A DNA stretch of 22,092 bases from Ginkgo biloba (GCA_024626585.2 JANKJI020000001.1:14725550-14747641); one strand, 5' to 3'. Shown: positions 4,222 to 20,720, counted from the stretch's first letter. Numbers and translations are program-made. The notes: generated by a model from the sequence alone, not told the origin.

Positions 4222-5225
4222 TGATGTGTCTTGTGTTCATCCTTGCACGGCCTTTTGCACGCCACATCGCATTTTTAACTTAATTACTCATTTTATTATT
4301 GTATAATTGTGTAGCTAGGCCAACGATCTAGGGTGCACATCTGCCAATCATTGTCCATATATACTACGGTTTACTTTCTAAATAAGAGATTAGCTATTTT
4401 CAGACTGTCAACTATTCATAGAAAGTGACGTAGATAACACTTTCTAATTTAGAATTAGGATTACTATTTTGAGACAGGAATTTTCCTATAAAGCTATGTA
4501 ATCAAGATCTATTTATTGCTCCTTTGAAGTGGAAGCACGTGATCCTAGCAGATAATTGGATGATTAGAAACAGTGGCAGATGTATTTGGGACACTATAAG
4601 GCTTGTAGGTCTTTTTCACCTTTCAAGGAAGAGATCATGCCTTGTATTTAAAAGAACTTGACACTTTTAGAATTGAACTAGCAGAACGAATTAGGGCTAG
4701 ATNNNNNNNNNNNNNNNNNNNNNNNNNNNNNNNNNNNNNNNNNNNNNNNNNNNNNNNNNNNNNNTCTTCTTGCCTTTTTAGGCAAAAGGCAGGTGATGTA
4801 ATTCTTTTGTTTATTTTAGTAATATAAGCAACATTTTCCAAAAGAAAAAAAAAGCTATGTAATCAACTCATTCCGTTAGATTGAAAGACGAGAGTTTTGA
4901 TAATCGAAGAGCCGAATCTTTTACATCTATTATCTTATGGTTTTTGTCTCTTAGTTGCTTCTTATTTACTTCTCTCAAATTACGTAATTTCTCTCTTTGG
5001 GTGAACCTAAAGCCGCAAGTCTTCCACCCGCATTCTCTTGGGTCGTTCTTTAGCAACCCTATGCTTTAGCTTCATATTAGGCTCACTATTTTCTTCTTTA
5101 TGTTGTAATTAGAAAAATTGTGCATGCTACATGGTTACAGACCATCGAATAAATTCTAGCTGTTGAGTTAGCAATTGTTGTCCCTTGAGTTTATAGATGC
5201 TAGAAATTTAGTTGGGATCTTAACA
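4222..5225 (+). mobile_element. LTR (TG...CA) interrupted by a truncated LINE; alternative end at 5131
   Basis: Starts TG right after the PPT, has TATAAA at 4487-4492, and ends ...TTAACA at 5225 immediately before a tRNA-iMet PBS. Confidence 0.6.
4506..4850 (+). mobile_element. 5'-truncated L1-type LINE (ORF2 C-terminus, 3'UTR, A-rich tail) with 16-bp target-site duplication
   Basis: Flanked by a perfect AAAGCTATGTAATCAA at 4490-4505 and 4851-4866, and ends in CAAAAGAAAAAA. It encodes LKWKHVILADNW...IWDTIRLVG and LYLKELDTFRIELAERIRAR, homologous to the minus-strand LINE end at 17340-17710 (LKWKDVTLGDN*...TWDTIRIVG...LHLKELDAFRFELVEQIWAR). Confidence 0.88.
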
Positions 5226-5800: not shown

Positions 5801-6269
5801 NNNNNNNNNNNNNNNNNNNNNNNNNNNNNNNNNNNNNNNNNNNNNNNNNNNNNNNNNNNNNNNNNNNNNNNNNNNNNNNNNNNNNNNNNNNNNNNNNNNN
5901 NNNNNNNNNNNNNNNNNNNNNNNNNNNNNNNNNNNNNNNNNNNNNNNNNNNNNNNNNNNNNNNNNNNNNNNNNNNNNNNNNNNNNNNNNNNNNNNNNNNN
6001 NNNNNNNNNNNNNNNNNNNNNNNNNNNNNNNNNNNNNNNNNNNNNNNNNNNNNNNNNNNNNNNNNNNNNNNNNNNNNNNNNNNNNNNNNNNNNNNNNNTG
6101 CTCGAGCTTCGGCATTCAGAAGGGCAGTAGGTGCAACTGGAAACCTCAGACAGGTTGATACATTATGAAATATGGAAGGTGTTCATGTTGGAAGCAATGA
6201 TAGAGAATGAGCACATGGAAAGGCACATGAGGTTTTGTCAGAGAGATGAATCACAAAGAGCTTGGATGT

Positions 6270-6467
6270 GCTTCCATTAAGCAACAACAGAATAACTTGG
6301 GTGCAAGATTTAGTCTTATTGATCCTGCATTCCTAGAGGCTCTTCTTGAAGATCTAAGAATTAAGGTCCTTGCTTCCCAATAGAATCATGTGGCACAAAC
6401 TGTTCCCTATAATCTGCCAACTACTAAAGCTATTGATCTAGAATTTCTTGCCACTCTTCCTCCAGAG
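6270..6467 (+). pseudogene. UPL1-like: Fragment of UPL1/UPL2-type (HUWE1-like) HECT E3 ubiquitin ligase: tandem UBM (DUF4414) motifs
   Basis: The frame of ORF 6390, read through TAG at 6381, gives IDPAFLEALLEDLRIKVLASQ*NHVAQTVPYNLPTTKAIDLEFLATLPPE. This matches the plant UPL1/2 pattern IDPxFLEALPEDLRAEVLASQQ...IDPEFLAALPP as I recall it. It may extend upstream to the gap at 6098. Confidence 0.85.
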
Positions 6468-6551
6468 TGTGGAAAGGAAAACATTATTGAGTTGGAACCA
6501 GGTACAACTTCAATAATGATTCCTCCTTATAGACAATCCCATTATAACAAT
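6456..6551 (+). mobile_element. Short Ty3/Gypsy pol fragment (protease-RT linker)
   Basis: LPPECGKENIIELEPGTTSIMIPPYRQSH matches the Gypsy pre-RT motif LPPxRxxEHxIELxPGxxPxxxxPYR. Confidence 0.8.
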
Positions 6552-7154
6552 CTCGCAGGAAAAGTGATTGATGATCCAATACTGATTTCAAGTGGTCATA
6601 CCTATGAGCAAGACACAATCTTGTGTGAGTCTGAAAATATTGAGTTGAAAGATCCCATCATTGGCAAGGATTTGCAGAATTTTTCTTTGACACCAAATCA
6701 TGCATTGTATTGTACTATAAAGTACTGGAGGTAGCAAAATTATGTAGCCTATATTTTTAAAGCAAAGATTAAATTGGAGACACGAGTAGAGGTTGTGCAA
6801 GAAAAAAACACTCACAACTTTGTTAGATTTCTGCAATGATAGTGCTAATGATAAAGACTGGATGGTGTTTGAATATTTAGTTCCACTTGTTTTGGAAGCA
6901 TTAAAGCCTTGGAATAATGAGTTAAAGGCGCTCTGTTTTTCAATCCTAAAATCAATTATTAAAGACAGTAATTATTGCAAGGAAAAGCTAGCTTAAGCTA
7001 GAGGGATTAAGCAGATCATTGGAAAGTTGAACCGAGACCCTGTAGTTACAAGGGAAGGTGTAGCCCTGCTATCAGAGTTGATAAATATAAGAATTTGCTG
7101 GAATAGCTGGCTCAAGAATGTGGTGCTATCTTGACGCTTGTAACCATTTTAGTA
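6552..7154 (+). pseudogene. PUB44-like: Fragment of plant U-box/ARM E3 ligase, PUB43/PUB44(SAUL1)-like
   Basis: U-box: GKVIDDPILISSGHTYEQDTI...DPIIGKDLQNFSLTPNHALYCTIKYWR. ARM region: *QNY...AKIKL..., DFCNDSANDKDWM..., KEKLA*ARGIKQIIGKLNRD...REGVALLSEL, GAILTLVTIL. Stops at 6732 and 6994, frameshifts near 6805 and ~7100; runs into a gap. Confidence 0.85.
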
Positions 7155-7254
7155 NNNNNNNNNNNNNNNNNNNNNNNNNNNNNNNNNNNNNNNNNNNNNN
7201 NNNNNNNNNNNNNNNNNNNNNNNNNNNNNNNNNNNNNNNNNNNNNNNNNNNNNN

Positions 7255-8419
7255 TCTAGAAGATCATATTCAAATCTTCAATTATGTTGTGGAAAAAACA
7301 ATAGTGGATAGAGGTTCAAATGTTATTGTCTATCTAGAATCAACTTGGAGAATTGGATTATATACCACCTTGTTATACGAATTATGTGGCTGACCAATTT
7401 GAGATTCGACTTAAAGTAGTACTCCAAGATGTGCCTATAACAATTGTAAGCATTACTGTAAAACAAGACTTTGCAATAGTCCAAATGGAAACTAACTTCT
7501 CCTACTCCACACTTCTAGGAAGACAGTGGCTATACGCCATAGAGGCAATTTAGGACTAGGGGAAATAGCAATGGATGATACATAAAATTCTAGTAGTATC
7601 ACACAGACCCTGGGCAGAAATAATTCTTAACTTGGAATGACATATCAACAAAACAACATCCAACACAACCATTGCCACTGAGGCTACGGCAAGCTCTTAT
7701 TAAGAATTTTCCTATCATGCGATTCAAGACTTCCTAACCATAATCAAAGATAACATCGAAGAACCTATAGAGCAAGGATAAATTGAAGTAAATAACAAGG
7801 ACTCCCTCTCAGAGCATATTCTCTGTTGGTTGAAAGGAGCTTATGCGACCTCAAATGCGCGTATTTGTTTCTGCCAGATCCTTGTATATGATGATGAGGA
7901 ATCAGATGAGGAAAGTAACTACGATGATATATTATCAGAATCTGATGAGTCAAGTGATGATGAAGTAGAAGAAGAAACTAACCTCCTTGGAACCACAAAA
8001 AATGTGTTAATCTCAGTCATGTAATAAATTCCTAAATTTAGCAAATTGAACTTGAAAGGAATGGGCAACAACATGCCCCACAATGCATAAAGATATGGAT
8101 GAATAACCACTTTTGGGGATGACAAAAATGCAAGACCATGTTTTCTATAACATTTGAGAGACAAGCTTTTAGTTGTTTTTTAGCTCGTAGAGTAGAATCT
8201 CGAGATTGGGACCACTTACGACATTACTTTGAGATGCGATTTAGAGGATGTTGGTCACCACCATTAGCAATATATAATGTATGGGACCCCTCACAAAATT
8301 TTGTTGATAACAATTGAAATTTCACCTCGAAGGCAAAATTGAAGTCGCAAATACATGGTATCCGAAATGGAAGAGATAGAGATAAATTATGATGCAAGAT
8401 AAAATCTCAAGAGGGTGAT
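7255..8419 (+). pseudogene. Degenerate non-chromovirus Ty3/Gypsy (Athila/Tat-like) aspartic protease and downstream acidic linker
   Basis: TIVDRGSNV (cf. IVDGGSGVN), VADQ, LQDVPITI, DFAIV and YSTLLGRQWL are retropepsin motifs. An acidic tract lies at 7890-7980 and the rest is heavily decayed. Confidence 0.7.
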
Positions 8420-10077: not shown

Positions 10078-11699
10078 NNNNNNNNNNNNNNNNNNNNNNN
10101 NNNNNNNNNNNNNNNNNNNNNNNNNNNNNNNNNNNNNNNNNNNNNNNNNNNNNNNNNNNNNNNNNNNNNNNNNNNNNNNNNNNNNNNNNNNNNNNNNNNN
10201 NNNNNNNNNNNNNNNNNNNNNNNNNNNNNNNNNNNNNNNNNNNNNNNNNNNNNNNNNNNNNNNNNNNNNNNNNNNNNNNNNNNNNNNNNNNNNNNNNNNN
10301 NNNNNNNNNNNNNNNNNNNNNNNNNNNNNNNNNNNNNNNNNNNNNNNNNNNNNNNNNNNNNNNNNNNNNNNNNNNNNNNNNNNNNNNNNNNNNNNNNNNN
10401 NNNNNNNNNNNNNNNNNNNNNNNNNNNNNNNNNNNNNNNNNNNNNNNNNNNNNNNNNNNNNNNNNNNNNNNNNNNNNNNNNNNNNNNNNNNNNNNNNNNN
10501 NNNNNNNNNNNNNNNNNNNNNNNNNNNNNNNNNNNNNNNNNNNNNNNNNNNNNNNNNNNNNNNNNNNNNNNNNNNNNNNNNNNNNNNNNNNNNNNNNNNN
10601 NNNNNNNNNNNNNNNNNNNNNNNNNNNNNNNNNNNNNNNNNNNNNNNNNNNNNNNNNNNNNNNNNNNNNNNNNNNNNNNNNNNNNNNNNNNNNNNNNNNN
10701 NNNNNNNNNNNNNNNNNNNNNNNNNNNNNNNNNNNNNNNNNNNNNNNNNNNNNNNNNNNNNNNNNNNNNNNNNNNNNNNNNNNNNNNNNNNNNNNNNNNN
10801 NNNNNNNNNNNNNNNNNNNNNNNNNNNNNNNNNNNNNNNNNNNNNNNNNNNNNNNNNNNNNNNNNNNNNNNNNNNNNNNTATTAATTAGCTTTTGTTTGT
10901 TTGATCTCAAATCGTGTTTGTATGATTTTATATCTGTTTCTTTGTGTTTAAGTAGGGATACATATATCCATGATAATTCCTTTTGTTATGATTGCCTTAA
11001 AAGCACTCTCCATTTTTTTTTTTCTTTCTAAATTGTTTCTATATTTTATACATATAGTTTTTTTTTTTTGTAAATATATAATTCTATTAATAGGAAAAAT
11101 TACATACAGTTAAAAAAAGACTGGGTGGCAATAGGCACACCCATTATTGACTAAAGGGAACTTAAATACACACTATGTACCTGATTCTAAAAAATCATAA
11201 TGACATAATAAAACAACCATATAAGACACAAGTAATAAGATTTATATAGAAGGAATAAAATTATTAGGCTTTAGGTCCCCCCAACCATCCAAGCCATTTT
11301 TTTTGTAAATGTCTCCCTTATAGGGAGAAATGATCAAGGCAAGTGTAGAGAAGGTACCCTCCTTTCTGGGAGAGATAGACAACTCTAAAGTAGGTTCCTT
11401 TAATAATCCATTAGTCTTTTTTTGGGGGGGATATATGGGAGTGGCATGTCCTCTTCCTCCTTTGCCTCACCATGGAGGTCTGCTACCACTTTTGGATCCG
11501 CTGCTTCCCTTGTCTTCTTTAACTAAGACTTGGCTTATGGTATAATGGGTAGAGCCCCAATAGTTAATCAATTCCATTAGGTGGGATAGTTCCAATTGCA
11601 CTTTATTATCTTGTAGTTTGATCTACAGTGTACAATTAGCAAGGATGCAAGATACAAAATGGCTAGTTACTAAGTTATGAGGAGGTGTTTAAACATTAT

Positions 11700-13993: not shown

Positions 13994-15994
13994 TAAAGCA
14001 TTGGTAGCTTTGGTTATTGTAGTACGAATGCCTTGGTTTCCAAGGTTGCATCTTCTTAGGGAAGATTTCTTCATTTCATTCTATGCTCACAAACTAGTTT
14101 TGCCCTTAGATCCTTTTTTCTTACTTCCATCATGCCTTCTAGTTCTAGGATCAATTTACCTTCCTCATCAAGTATTGGTAGTTCTATCTAAGGCACCACC
14201 TGTGATCTAATTTGTTTTTTAGGCAAGAAATATGAAAAAACATCATGAATGCTACCTTTGTTTTGAACATGCACCGCATATGTGACTTCTACTTTTATGC
14301 AAATTTTGTATGGTCGTAGAATTTTGGTGCCTAACTTGTTTTTGCCCTTCTCTTTTAGCAACATTTGCTGGTATGGTTGTAGATTAATGAAAACCATGTT
14401 GCCTACGTTAAATGATCTTTTGCTACGTGCCTTGTCTATTTGTTGCCTCATTTCATTCCTTCTTGTATTCACATTGTCCTATAAGATTTTAATTAAATTT
14501 TACATTTCCCTCATTGAATCTTGTGTTGTTGCTACCCTCAACTCCTATGGCATGTAGTCTTTCATGGGTGGTAGGTTGTAGCTATGAAATGCTAAAAATA
14601 GGGGCATCATTGCTGACATGTGATGTGTTGTACCATCATGCAACTAGGTGCAACGATTTGGCCCACTTTGTCTTCTTAACCCCTGCATATGTTCTTAGGT
14701 ACCCTTCAAGGTGTTTGTTCACTGTCTCTGTTTGTCTGTTTGTCTAGGGAGGGTATGTAGTGCTCATGTTAAACTTGGTCCCTGTTAGTTGAAAAGTTCC
14801 TTCTAAAAATGACTTGTGAATTTTGGGTCTCAGTGATAGGTTATTCTCTTAGGGAATCCATGATATTTATGTACGTACTTCATAAAGACCTCTATGATCT
14901 GCGAAACCTTATATTTTGAGTTGATGGCTATGAAATGTGCAAATTTGGTTAGGCGGTCAACAACTATGACTATGGTATCTTTATAGTCTGAATTACGTAA
15001 TCTTGTTGTAAAATCCATTGATATCTCCTCCCATTTTTTGTTAGGAACATTGAGAGGTTGAAGCTTTCCTAGCAACACTACATTTTCCATCTTTTGCCTC
15101 TTGTAGCTGTCACATTCTACTGTAAATTTTGTTATATTGCTTTTTATTTTTGGCTTATAGAATATTCGGTTGATCTTGCAATACGATTTCTTGAATCCCA
15201 CATGTTTGACAGTCAGGCGTAGGTGTCCTTTCATCACTTTTTGAATGAACTCCAACCCTTTTTTTAGATATATTCATCCTTCAAATATGATGCTTCCATG
15301 ACCTTTTAATTGTTTGTTATATCTTCTATCAACTGCCATGTATTAGGATCCTTTTAATACTTGTGTTGAACTTCTCTACTCCAAGATAGCTCTAGGATCA
15401 TCATTACATTTAGTGAAGCCTCTTAGAATTTCCTTGACAACGCATGTGTTATAATTTCTCTTTTCCTTTTTTTTATACCATCTCAAAATCAAAGGCCTAT
15501 GTCTTATCAATCGACTCTTTCTACTCATCGATTAGTGATTCTTGACACAGTAGGTACTTCAAACTGTTATGGTTTGTCTTTACTATAAACTCATTGCCTA
15601 ATACGTACTACTACCAATTTTCTAGTGCATGCATGATACTGAGCATCTCCTCGTTATAAGTAGATAATCTCTACTTCCTATTGTTTAATTTCTTACTTGC
15701 AAATGCTATTGGTCTTCCTTTCTACATTAATATTGCCCCAATTTTGGTTCTTAAAGCATCACATTCTACCATAAATATTTTTGTGAAATCTAGAGTTGCT
15801 AATATCAGGGGGTTGTGAGTGTCGTCTTTAGTTCTTCTCTTTGTTAAATCCATAAGTGGAGTTGCTTTTGTTGAATAATTTCGTACAAACTTTTGAAAGA
15901 ATCTAATCATGCTAAGAAACCCTCTTAATTTGGTGACTGTCTTTGGTCTTGGCCAATCTTTCATGGCTTAGATTCTTGCTAGGTCAATACTTAC
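13994..15994 (-). pseudogene. pol: Chromoviral Ty3/Gypsy pol: RT C-terminus, RNase H, integrase, GPY-like motif, chromodomain
   Basis: RT/RH: KDWPRPKTVTKLRGFL and VECDA...IGAILM*KGRPIAFASKKL. Integrase: HVGFKKSY...WEEISMDFTT...VIVVDRLTKFAHF...HGFPKRI, then RPYKI...IHDVF. Chromodomain (~13995-14185): ELPILDEEGKLILE...MK*RNLP*EDATLE. Many stops and frameshifts. Confidence 0.95.
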
Positions 15995-16599
15995 NNNNNN
16001 NNNNNNNNNNNNNNNNNNNNNNNNNNNNNNNNNNNNNNNNNNNNNNNNNNNNNNNNNNNNNNNNNNNNNNNNNNNNNNNNNNNNNNNNNNNNNNGGCATG
16101 GAATCATAATCCATAAATTACAAGGTTGTTTATCCCTTGAAATGGGATTGAAAATTAGAGTACACAATAATGTTGCCTCATATGAGGATTAGTTGATATT
16201 TATGTATATATTCCTAAGCTATTAATTGGAATAATCATAGGCTATTGTCCAAAACATAGAAACTAGAATTGAAAGCTTTTAGTTTGTGAAGAAGAACAAA
16301 ATAAGTCTAAACTTAAGAAATATGAGCCCCTACTCCTAATCACTCCAGAGATTTTATCGTCTTTCTAAGGGTAACTATCAAATTAGTTACAAACTGTTCA
16401 TTTTATATTTTTAGGAATAGATGAAGTTGCATTTGCCATGTCGCAAGGATTTGATGTGATAATTGAATGGTGGAGGTTCAAAGATGCTTAGTCTCATCAT
16501 CGTGATATTTTGCTAATTTTTTATGCTTGTTGTCTTTTTAACATATTTGTATGATATTGTACTTTAACCTATATTATTGATCTGGTTGATTCAATATAT

Positions 16600-17339
16600 T
16601 TTTTTTCATCTTTTGAATGAACTCCGACCCTTTGTTTAGATATATTTGTACTTTTGACACCCTTGTTGGACTTTTGTAATCTAGGTTGGCTTTATGACCC
16701 TCTTTGCATTTAGTGAAAAATCTTCAAATTTCCTTGACAATGAATTTGCTACAATGTTCTCTTTCCCCTTTGTGTATACTATCTCAAAATTGAGGGTTTG
16801 GATCGTATCAATCCACTTTTTCTATTTATTGGTTAGTGGCTTTTGATGCAGTAGGTACTTCAAATGCTATGATGTCTTTACTGTAAACTTATTGCCTAAT
16901 AGGTACTATCACAAATTTTCTACTACGTGCATGATAGCTAGCATTTCCTTATTATACATAGATAACATCTTCCCCTAGTTGTTTAATTTCTTACTTTCAC
17001 ATGCTATTGGTCTTCCCTTGTGCATTAATACTACAATTTTGGTTCTTGAAGCATTGCATTCCACCATAAATGCTTTGGTGAAATCTAGAGTTGCTAATAC
17101 TGGGTTTGTTGTGAGTGTCATTTTTAGTTCTTCAAAATCCCTTTGAACATCATCATTCCATTTGAATGCATCCTTCTTTGCTAAGTCCATGAGTGGTGCA
17201 ACTATTGTTGAATAAATTTGCATGAACTTTCAATAGAATCCAATCATGCGAAGAAACCCTCTTAATTTGGTGACTGTCCTTGCTCTTGGCCAATCTTTGA
17301 TGGCTTGGAATTTTGTTGGGTGGACACTTAACGCCATTC
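16600..17339 (-). pseudogene. pol: Second paralogous Gypsy RT/RNase H fragment of the same family
   Basis: PLMDLAKKDAFKWNDDVQRDFEELKMTLTTNPVLATLDFTKAFMVECNAS. Long near-identical stretches with 15235-15994, e.g. AAGAAACCCTCTTAATTTGGTGACTGTC in both. The right end is cut by a LINE poly(A). Confidence 0.93.
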
Positions 17340-17896
17340 TTTTTTTTTGAAAGAATGCTGCTTATATTACTTCTAGAAAAATGACAGAATTACATCACAT
17401 GTCTTCTCCCTATAAGGGAGAGAAGAGAAATCATATCAGTCTAGGCTCCAAATGAAGCCAAATCTATTTGTCTCCTAAAAATATCAGCTCTAGCCCATAT
17501 TTGTTCTACTAATTCAAATCTAAAAGCATCCAACTCCTTTAAGTGCAAGGTACCACCTCCTCCTTGGAATGTCAAGTTACAGCTTCACCTCCACAAGAAG
17601 GAAATACCTACAATCCTTATGGTATCCCAAGTAAGTTCTCCATTGTCTTTGATCATCTAATTATCCCCTAGGGTTACGTCCTTCCACTTCAAAGAGGCTA
17701 CAAATAGTGGTTCATCCTCGGCTTGAACCCACTTCTAAAAGGTTTTAGCGGTTGGGCATTTCCATAATACATGTAAAATTGATTCCTTCTTTTCACATAC
17801 AACACAATAGGGGTCCATTAGGCCTAACTTATATAATTTCTCTTTGATTGCAAGGTTGTGATGTATCAACAACCAACGCAAGACCTTTAACTTGAA
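17340..17896 (-). mobile_element. L1-type LINE 3' segment: zf-RVT/CCHC, ORF2 C-terminus, 3'UTR, poly(A)
   Basis: Minus strand: FKLKVLRWLLIHHNLAIKEKLYKLGLMDPYCVVCEKKESILHVLWKCPTAKTF*KW ... WDTIRIVGISFLWR ... ELDAFRFELVEQIWARADIF, with T9 on the plus strand at 17340-17348. Confidence 0.92.
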
Positions 17897-18640
17897 TGTC
17901 GTTATCCCTTACGGATGGAATTTCCTAGAATTCCGGAGCACTTCAGAGCTTGCATTGAAAAAATTGTGAAGCCCTTTGGTCGGCTTTTGGTAGGGGATAA
18001 GAGAGGATCCCACTCGATGTGACCCAATGCCAGGGTCTGTGTGGAGGTGGATTTAGCTAGAAATCTACCATCAGAGATTTGGTGTTTCCTTCACAATGGG
18101 CGGTGCATGTGCAAAAGGTACTTTATCTTAACTTCCCCAATTGTTGTTATGCCTTCTTGTTGCCAAATCATTTGATTAAAGATTGCCCTCATAAAAAAAT
18201 TGAACAAGCTAAGTCAACAACAACTGCACCAAAGACAAAGAAGGGTGATTTGATAGATAAAACTAAAATGAGCACCATGACAACAGATCAAAACAAAGGG
18301 AAAGATACTGGGAATGATGAAGGGTGGATTACTAAGACATTTAGAAAGACAGACAAGCTTGGTACCTCTCAACAGAAAGTAGCAGAATCACAACAGCTGA
18401 AGCTGATAGATAAACAAAAATGGGCCCCCATGTCAACCACTCAGTCAAGCCACAATACTTAGCCAAATTGCAATGTTCAGGGGTCAAGTGCAACACCGAC
18501 TCATCGTGCTCATGTTGATTCTCTAAGCAAAAGGAAGGAGGCAATTCCCAACAACTGCTCCATTGATGCAAATAAATCTGACAGGCAAGATAAACCAGAC
18601 TCAAACTTTTCAAACTCGCCAACCGTCTGGACAACTATCA
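17897..18640 (+). pseudogene. LINE ORF1 remnant (5'-truncated; zinc knuckle region plus disordered tail)
   Basis: YPLRMEFPRIPEHF...IVKPFGRLL...NARVCVEVDLARNLPSEI...QKVLYLNFPNCCYAFLLPNHLIKDCP follows the plant L1 ORF1 pattern (PVWV..P.LP, ARVCVEVDL, CxxCx4Hx4C). Confidence 0.85.
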
Positions 18641-18691
18641 GTTAAATAATGCATTTTCAACCCCCGAGCAGGGACTTATGGATGGTTGCCC

Positions 18692-20199
18692 ATGAAGGTA
18701 AAGATTTTGGCTTGGAATGTGAGGGGATCCTTAGGGCCGAGAAGGCGAGCTCTTTTGAAATCACTTATTTCCAAGCTACACTTTGATGTTCTTCTCATAC
18801 AAGAAATAAAAATTATTGGTTTTCGGTTGAGAATGTTGATGTCGAGTTGTTGGTTTGGGGACTTCATGGTAACAACTCATAATGATGCTTGCAGAGGGGT
18901 TGTTTGTGCAGTTGCTTCTTGTCTTTCTCCTTACATAGTTGCAAAAGGGTAAGACCCAATGGCTAGGTCTTGCTGGATCACTTTGATGTTAGTTGGCAGT
19001 GTATGGGGATTCTGTTTGATTTATGCACCCATTGACCTAGTCGGTAGATCCCAATTATGGGATTGGATGGCACATTTGATCCTGATGGTAGAGTGGGTCC
19101 TGGGAAGTGATTTTAATATGGTAGAGTGGGATGGGGATAGAGTGGGGGTTGAGCTCTCACCCTTGGTTCTTTGGAAAGGCAAGCTTGGAATGATTGTAAA
19201 AGGGTGTTAGGGGTCAAGGATGTGATATGGGGACAAAAGGTATTTGATGTTGGATGTTGGTACATGTGGTCAAATTGGCAGAAAGGGGATGATCGCATTC
19301 AAGCACGGTTGGATCGGATTTATGCTAACCCTCTTACTACCACATTTGTTTTCGGGGCACTATAGATCAGTACATATTGAAGACTCAATAACAAGGTTAG
19401 ATCATCTCTTGGTATCAACCGACATGGTGATAAGGGATGGTTTTAGCATGAATGGTAAGCTACCTTACAAACTAAATGTATATCTTCTAGACTCAGAAGA
19501 GTGTCTGTAGGCTATTGACAATGTATGGAATATGGTACCTCGCCCTTAGAATGGAGAGGGATGGATCCTTTGGTGGGAAGTAGCAGTGTTGCGTACAATA
19601 AAGTTCTTGCAAGGATGGGGCAAAATGGTGGCAAGAGCTAGAAGGTGTATGGAACAATCTCTTAGATGTCAACTAAGCCTTAGTCGGAAAGAATTAGAAG
19701 AGGACATCTTCAACACATTGAAGCAACAAGTAGCCACTCTAGAGCACCGACTTCGACAACATGAGGAGTATAAAGCTAGAGGGGCTTAAATTTTTGCCCG
19801 GATCAAACTGGATCAAGGATGGGGATGCGTCGTCCAAGTTCTATTTCTAGTGTCTAAGGAAAAAACTCACTTTTGAGAGAATTCTTGCTCAAAAAGACTC
19901 ATTTGGTAATGTTTTTGAGGAAGACATATGAATTAGGGAAATTTTCGAAGGCCATTTCCAACAAATTTTTTCCTCCCTTAGATGTGATTCTACACGCCAA
20001 GCATCTAGGCATATGATCAGAGGAGTAGTAACAACACTAGTTGAAGGCTTTGAAAGAGGTCATCTAGCACAACAAATTGAATTGGATGAGCTTGAAGAAG
20101 CAATGTGGCACATGAAGAACAAAAAAACTCCTAGGCCGGATGGGCTATTTATTGAATTTTACTATAAGATGTGGCCAATGATTGGCGAGGATCTTCTTC
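18692..20199 (+). pseudogene. LINE ORF2 remnant: APE endonuclease through start of RT
   Basis: MKVKILAWNVRGS, DVLLIQE, IYAP, WVLGSDFNMVE, ARLDRIY, LDH, WIKDGDASSKFY and MKNKKTPRPDGLFIEFY. Disrupted by stops and frameshifts; ends at a 100-N gap. Confidence 0.95.
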
Positions 20200-20437: not shown

Positions 20438-20496
20438 ATTTGATAACTAACGAAGACATCTCTTATGATCAATTAAAAAAAACAAAAAGAAAAAAA

Positions 20497-20625
20497 CATG
20501 TATCTCTATGCATGTACATGTATATCTATGCATGTACATGTATATCTATGCATGTACATGTATATCTATACATATATATATATATATATATATATTCATG
20601 TATATCTATCTATCTATCTATATGT

Positions 20626-20658
<33 letters not shown>

Positions 20659-20720
20659 CATATGATAATAATAATAACAAGGAACTAAATATAAAAACAA
20701 TAAGTAATACATATATATAA
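20497..20720. repeat. Compound mini/microsatellite: 20-bp CATGTACATGTATATCTATG x~3.7, then (TA)n, (TATC)n, (CA)n, (ATA)n
   Basis: Directly visible; full units at 20511-20530 and 20531-20550, and a third at 20551-20570 differing at its last base. Confidence 0.95.

Follow-up and report, generated by a model that had tools for sequence, protein, structure and literature searches.

A decayed mosaic of UPL1-type, Ty3/Gypsy pol and U-box/ARM sequence in Ginkgo biloba and its possible origin by reverse-transcriptase template switching

A single reading frame in draft sequence of Ginkgo biloba passes through pieces of a HECT ubiquitin ligase, a retrotransposon polyprotein and a U-box ubiquitin ligase. 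The question that this locus raises is whether the arrangement is what remains of a gene in which these parts once worked together, or a by-product of the processes by which fragments of genes are copied and joined in a genome rich in transposable elements (TEs). The stretch of DNA that was analyzed, referred to here as the window, is 22,092 nt long (GCA_024626585.2, JANKJI020000001.1:14725550-14747641). This article describes the three fragments and the joins between them, examines what an intron site reveals of the route by which one of them was copied, and weighs the explanations that have been proposed for their union.

Three sources in one reading frame

The window is AT-rich draft sequence interrupted by 14 runs of N, the largest of which spans 802 nt (10078-10879). 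Most of these gaps are round-sized (50 or 100 nt) and are thus placeholders of unknown length, so that distances between contigs in the scaffold are unreliable. The entire mosaic is carried by one gap-bounded contig of 1,056 bp (6099-7154, delimited from the list of N runs and without a strand of its own), which contains no N and is flanked by gaps at 5801-6098 and 7155-7254. The frame phased on position 6102 extends over 6246-6731 with one stop, a TAG at 6381-6383, and is closed by a further TAG at 6732-6734. A preliminary description of the locus had placed the frame at 6318-6731 with a single TAG at 6381 and no gap, and these coordinates are correct; the frame it reported as a continuous stretch is real, but the gaps that flank the contig had gone unmentioned. 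The three fragments abut one another in this frame, all in sense orientation on the plus strand. Their attribution in that description to three unrelated sources, a UPL1-type HECT ligase, Ty3/Gypsy pol and a U-box/ARM ligase, was borne out when each identity was checked against real sequences by tblastn and with Pfam and PDB. Four in-frame stops (6381, 6732, 6994, and 7104) and two frameshifts interrupt the mosaic, in agreement with the earlier view that the copy is now disrupted. A search of Rfam returned no matches.

The first fragment (6282-6467, + strand), recognized by tblastn, tblastx and the Pfam UBM model, derives from the coding sequence of a UPL1-type HECT E3 ligase. It comprises a first UBM repeat (6318-6380) preceded by about 12 upstream residues, then a linker of 17 aa and the opening 12 residues of a second UBM repeat (6432-6467), which is truncated at 'LPP(E)', where the homology to UPL1 ends. 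The references were the exons of three plant UPL1 loci (L008-L010) from metagenome contigs, picked by the UPL1 pattern IDPAFLEALPE[DE]. Their top match in the window lies at 6282-6479, where 66 aa align without gaps at 44-47% identity (E 5e-10 to 1e-9) and the spacing from UBM1 to UBM2 is equal, at 38 aa; the fragment is colinear with plant UPL1 over UBM1, linker and UBM2. UBM (PF14377) is the sole Pfam family matched by each motif, with 13.6 bits (E 0.047) at 6318-6374 and 15.6 bits (E 0.01) at 6432-6467, both below the gathering score of 23.3, and the UBM structure of HUWE1 (2mul) matches the piece at E 0.89. In the linker, UPL1 proteins have Q at the position of the in-frame TAG (6381-6383, + strand). 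The likeness to angiosperm UPL1/UPL2 over this region is set against clear differences, as the fragment represents less than 2% of the gene (an internal stretch of about 190 nt from a very long mRNA), is truncated inside a domain and is interrupted by a stop. No UPL1 similarity was found elsewhere in the window by tblastx. An upstream continuation in another frame (6100-6281), suspected by eye, was rejected because its Smith-Waterman scores did not exceed those of shuffled sequences (z up to 0.7); one borderline score was obtained in this region, for frame 1 against L010 (z 2.9, reached by 4 of 300 shuffles).

The middle of the mosaic is a patch of 28 codons of Ty3/Gypsy pol (6456-6539, + strand) that corresponds to the conserved stretch just before the reverse transcriptase (RT) domain (LPP..I.L.PGT..PYR.S); the remainder of the RT is absent after it. 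Pfam has no model for the region just upstream of RVT_1, and Gypsy elements from IMG/VR were therefore used as references. These five loci (L003-L007), found with the pattern KYPLPRIDD, are UViG contigs that are filed as viral although they are plant-type Ty3/Gypsy elements, several of them with in-frame stops in pol. When a 197-aa pol segment of L004 was compared by tblastn with the whole 22-kb window, its top match fell exactly on 6456-6539, with 28 aa aligned without gaps at 43% identity (E 0.016; alignment row LPPECGKENIIELEPGTTSIMIPPYRQS), while the runner-up had an E of 2.0. Shuffling of the window piece gave a z value of 4.0 for L007 and of 6-8 for the other four Gypsy loci, and the score was reached by none of 5000 shuffles for L003, L004, and L006. 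The motif is present in all five loci (L003-L007), where it runs on into the RT, whereas in the window it runs into the U-box. A scan of IMG/VR with the PYRMAPAELKEL pattern gave no matches, and a PDB search with the linker piece found only a chance match to phosphoglucose isomerase (E 0.6). The host fragments on either side are joined directly, and in one orientation, to internal sequence of an LTR retrotransposon.

The third fragment opens with a U-box domain (6549-6731, + strand; PF04564, 25.7 bits, E 1.3e-5, above the gathering score of 21.4) that covers profile positions 9-67 of 73, about the first 8 being missing, and is closed by the TAG at 6732-6734, where orthologues have Q. Residues 60-115 of the piece can also be aligned with two U-boxes in the PDB, those of rice PUB12 and Arabidopsis PUB14. 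It continues as a helical and ARM-region part (6735-7154, + strand; tblastn, aa 331-470 of the Ginkgo protein P0031) that ends in the N-gap. The homology behind the continuation from U-box to ARM region that had been noted earlier is real, but following it takes two frameshifts, +1 at about 6803-6809 and -1 at about 7087/7088, and leads past stops at 6994-6996 and 7104-7106; nowhere does a complete U-box stand in an open reading frame.

An exhaustive HMMER pass over 1.84 billion representative proteins yielded 13 matches, all to the U-box and from query residues 48-61 onward, the best of which were Taxus protein P0001 (KAH9317358.1) and a 998-aa conifer transcript product (P0002). No known protein aligned colinearly with the whole stretch. 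A search with the conifer product led to Ginkgo protein Gb_00701 (P0031), by far the closest to the window copy: positions 6549-7154 are colinear with its residues 269-470 at 76-79% identity (79% for the U-box part, aa 269-329), and the mRNA L001 aligns by blastn with 6556-7144 at 71% identity over about 590 nt, with two 1-nt gaps. As judged from these alignments, the parent of the fragment is a gymnosperm gene of PUB42/44 type, belonging to a family with an N-terminal domain of about 260 aa, a central U-box (aa 266-332) and ARM repeats. The earlier label 'PUB44-like' is a loose one; a Cryptomeria paralogue is named PUB44 by NCBI, but the angiosperm homologues are named PUB42. The U-boxes of gymnosperm PUB42/44-type proteins (P0001, P0002, P0031-P0033) have K/R-D-P-I-T-G rather than the usual Cys-Pro turn and lack the Trp of the central helix. 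Since the clade itself is without these canonical plant features, the window copy had looked more degenerate than it is, and its odd U-box residues were rejected as signs of decay, being largely family traits common to P0001, P0002, and P0031. The copy shares KDPITG with gymnosperm PUB42/44 (P0031, P0001), but differs from it in retaining only about 20% of the PUB, in being truncated within the domain, in its stops and frameshifts and in the loss of the intron described below.

The surroundings of the contig contain further remnants of mobile elements. A decayed Ty3/Gypsy pol remnant on the minus strand (14609-17340) includes an integrase zinc-binding region (Pfam E 8.8e-6), RNase H and partial RT, and has an internal tandem duplication (15229-15993 versus 16604-17330, about 74% identity). 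An inverted pair of about 340 bp (4509-4851, +; 17337-17707, -) is 67-77% identical, each arm extending from the end of the protease to the start of the RT of one Gypsy family in opposite orientation, and the left fragment is truncated at both ends. A non-LTR (LINE) remnant (18650-20198, +) opens with the start of an endonuclease/exonuclease/phosphatase domain (Pfam E 3.7e-4, below the cut-off) and goes on as ORF2-like sequence; on the strand opposite to it, 17738-17908 holds a possible zf-RVT-like piece. Directly past the gap that ends the mosaic, retropepsin-like sequence (VDRGSNV ... LLGRQWL; 7256-7550, +) is followed by gag-like sequence (8123-8314, +), an order unlike that of an intact element; Pfam confirms neither resemblance. 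A compound microsatellite with a 10/20-nt tandem repeat, in which ACATGTATATCTATGCATGT units pass into AT and AC repeats, occupies 20476-20663.

Junctions and a conserved intron site

The passage from UPL1 to Gypsy sequence, junction 1, lies at 6456-6466 (+ strand). The codons for L-P-P (6456-6464) fall in both the UPL1 and the Gypsy alignment, and the breakpoint is for this reason not more finely placeable. Junction 2, from Gypsy to PUB (6525-6551, + strand), is likewise located on residues common to both partners, the 'PY' at 6525-6530, which belongs to PYR in Gypsy elements and to EPY or KPY just before the U-box in the PUB parents; the following seven codons (6531-6551, RQSHYNN) are ambiguous. 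The similarity at the junctions (LPP; PY) is seen at the amino-acid level and in non-parental sequences: the window has CTTCCTCC in common with the UPL1 loci, and L007 has an exact match to CCTTATAGA, neither comparison being with a parent. Because at each join both partners read the shared residues (LPP; PY) in an identical codon phase, no selection is needed for the frame to be kept. Retention of frame at both junctions had been read in the preliminary description as a hint of a once-expressed or TE-carried E3 chimera, with the caution that it would arise by chance about 1 time in 9; it need not reflect selection.

Information on the route by which the third fragment was copied comes from an exon-exon junction at 6981-6982 (+ strand), the site of a phase-0 intron that related genes have kept across seed plants. 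In the Cryptomeria japonica orthologue (L011, the SUGI_1195280 locus) a 132-nt GT..AG intron (2489-2620) lies between K412 and E413, and an interruption is found at the same site, which corresponds to aa 412/413 of P0031, both in a Cryptomeria paralogue (L012) and in a PUB42-like gene of an angiosperm (L013). The L011 locus has three introns of 252, 132, and 1266 nt, all multiples of three; internal stops and GT..AG ends establish the 132-nt sequence as a real intron. The window is continuous at 6981|6982, and the tblastx HSP stops at position 2488 of L011, equivalent to 6981 of the window, and resumes past the intron. Loss of introns relative to parent-type genes, proposed earlier as a check, is thus seen for the PUB piece at a site interrupted in L011, L012, and L013. 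By parsimony, the actual Ginkgo-like PUB parent would have possessed this intron as well. Since the fragment crosses the site uninterrupted, it is a spliced, RNA-derived copy, which supports template switching by a reverse transcriptase as the source of the mosaic. The UPL1 piece lies within a single exon in the angiosperm loci L008-L010 and is therefore uninformative on whether that part also derives from RNA.

Competing accounts of the origin

The best explanation, to which we assign a probability of about one half, is that the mosaic is a decayed chimeric processed pseudogene produced by reverse-transcriptase template switching of the LTR-mediated type. A reverse transcriptase, most likely in the virus-like particle of a Ty3/Gypsy element, would have copied RNA, taking as its first template part of a spliced PUB (U-box/ARM) mRNA. 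At the short shared stretch PY it would have switched to retrotransposon pol RNA, presumably the element's own and the source of the middle patch, and after copying 28 codons would have switched again at the shared LPP to a UPL1 mRNA, within the UBM region. The cDNA would then have been integrated and left to neutral drift. So conceived, the three joins would stem from a single reverse-transcription event, the enzyme would be a Gypsy rather than a LINE RT, and the shared residues would correspond to nucleotide microhomologies in the true parent RNAs.

Several features argue for such an origin. Both host pieces come from the interior of mRNAs and the middle piece from the interior of retrotransposon coding sequence; the PUB piece follows the mRNA L001 colinearly and crosses the intron site; all parts lie in one orientation; and residues are shared at the junctions. 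Against it, the 84-nt middle patch could equally be filler introduced during DNA repair, and the nearby Gypsy remnants (4509-4851, +; 14609-17707, -) are of another family or do not form one colinear element. Around the mosaic, the 22 kb yielded neither an LTR pair nor a target-site duplication nor a coherent host element. With N-gaps at both ends of the contig and heavy decay of the region, flanking LTRs and the rest of an element are not demonstrable. The preliminary description had left the choice between template switching and templated repair open; the three-source mosaic and template switching are supported by the intron loss and the single orientation, but repair filler stays a rival.

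A known class of events offers a close parallel. LTR-mediated retroposition depends on microsimilarity, sometimes involves more than two switches and gives rise to chimeras of several parental genes, as in maize Bs1, and an example of an LTR-mediated chimeric retrocopy is Drosophila CG4799_CG11924_r (PMC5131818). The Ginkgo mosaic resembles these retrocopies in its intron-less partial pieces of host mRNA fused to internal retrotransposon coding sequence, in having more than two switch points and more than one parental gene and in its single orientation with short runs of shared residues at the junctions. It differs in that the retrotransposon part is just 84 nt long and lies between two host fragments, in that the copy is old and dead, and in that microhomology is visible at the protein level only.

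A possible but clearly less probable origin is a patchwork built at the DNA level, in which a PUB processed pseudogene, a Gypsy copy and a UPL1 pseudogene would have been juxtaposed by nested insertions and trimmed by illegitimate-recombination deletions between short repeats, or in which DSB-repair filler would have been involved. The setting is congenial to it, since the whole window consists of truncated and scrambled TE pieces (among them 4509-4851, the duplicated pol at 15229-17330, and the LINE at 18650-20198) and the mosaic is not bracketed by LTRs or target-site duplications. Illegitimate-recombination deletions in the turnover of plant genomes leave microhomology at their junctions, so that the shared residues would suit a patchwork too. 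It would, however, call for three separate events and at least two precise deletions, after which the pieces would share one orientation by chance in 1/4 of cases and one frame in 1/9. A Gypsy insertion would be expected to leave an LTR at its edge rather than a 28-codon patch from inside pol, unless both edges had been deleted, and the loss of the PUB intron still demands an RNA step. An improbable further alternative is a LINE-mediated tripartite chimeric retrogene, in which a target-primed non-LTR RT would have copied a 5′-truncated PUB mRNA, then Gypsy RNA and then UPL1 mRNA. LINE-mediated chimeric retrogenes have full-length small RNAs as their 5′ components and are flanked by direct repeats (PMC2104539). 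The mosaic shares with this class three presumably RNA-derived parts that are directly joined in one orientation, the double template switch that this implies and a 5′-truncated 3′ part, and the window contains LINE remnants (18650-18949, Exo_endo_phos, E 3.7e-4). The class fits less well because its 5′ parts are full-length small RNAs, whereas the mosaic has short pieces from the interior of long RNAs as its 5′ and middle parts, the UPL1 piece of about 190 nt included. The 3′ end of the mosaic, where the class would have a poly(A) tail, is lost in the gap at 7155-7254, and its 5′ limit is undefined.

That the assembler joined three unrelated loci in a small contig is very unlikely. The scaffold is a draft with 14 N-gaps and the contig is only 1,056 bp long, features in keeping with an artefact of this kind, but the partners overlap at the joins by no more than about 9-27 nt, which is less than the length of the k-mers over which assemblers mis-join, each piece is already a diverged pseudogene rather than a functional gene, and the joins keep both orientation and frame. 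Capture by a Pack-MULE or Helitron was also considered and was rejected, as the only inverted pair, 4509-4851/17337-17707, is made of Gypsy coding fragments and the PUB piece has lost its intron; both arms encode the Gypsy protease/RT boundary and are therefore not the TIRs of a Pack-MULE-like carrier.

Decay, function and the gymnosperm context

Whether the mosaic ever served its host can be judged from the pattern of its decay. Relative to P0031, the copy has changed at 22 of the 95 positions that do not vary across six gymnosperm orthologues and at 25 of the 105 that do (Fisher p = 1.0); no constraint on conserved residues is detectable. In a three-way nucleotide alignment, for which two exon stretches of L011 were joined, GC-to-AT changes number 42 and AT-to-GC changes 21. 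The decay is neutral. No junction-spanning protein was found by HMMER among the 1.84 billion representatives, and for the 116-aa and 45-aa pieces no protein sharing three words was found among proteins 0.55-1.75 times the query length.

These results bear on the proposal in the preliminary description that the locus was once expressed as a functional E3 chimera, which fared poorly. That it is the remnant of a once-functional or TE-propagated gene coupling a ubiquitin-binding UBM to a U-box is the least probable of the readings considered. The retained frame and the ubiquitin-pathway nature of both host parts speak in its favor, but both UBM2 and the U-box are cut short where the pieces meet, a start codon context is missing, invariant residues have changed as often as variable ones, junction-carrying proteins are lacking both among the representatives and among short predicted proteins, and the frame can be explained by residues that the partners share in phase. 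Very little credence can also be given to the idea that the mosaic is a decayed copy of a family in a Ginkgo-like lineage that was formerly transcribed, or spread by a non-autonomous Gypsy element, and that would for a time have encoded a UBM plus U-box/ARM protein. The mosaic is without function now, and it was probably never functional, having been dead on arrival.

Gymnosperm TEs are reported to have captured some 400,000 gene fragments per genome, and 13.7% of the host TEs contain at least two fragments (PMC13477047). The Ginkgo locus resembles the captured fragments of these giga-genomes in being TE-rich and decayed and in holding host exon fragments; the survey is statistical, whereas here the junctions are resolved and the intron loss that marks the RNA route is visible. 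The mosaic is most likely a by-product of a reverse transcriptase jumping between RNAs, junk of a sort common in gymnosperm genomes and not a working gene. Its probable kind, the LTR-mediated chimeric retrocopy, is already known, and it reveals no new gene architecture, mechanism or function; what is new is that the PUB fragment passes the intron site at 6981|6982 unbroken. For annotation it carries the warning that domains combined in frame within TE-rich draft sequence are not to be taken for genes. It also provides a worked example in which RNA origin can be read from a single conserved intron site and both junctions fall on residues shared by the partners, and thus a view at base-pair scale of how reverse transcription by retrotransposons shuffles exon fragments in the giga-genomes of gymnosperms.
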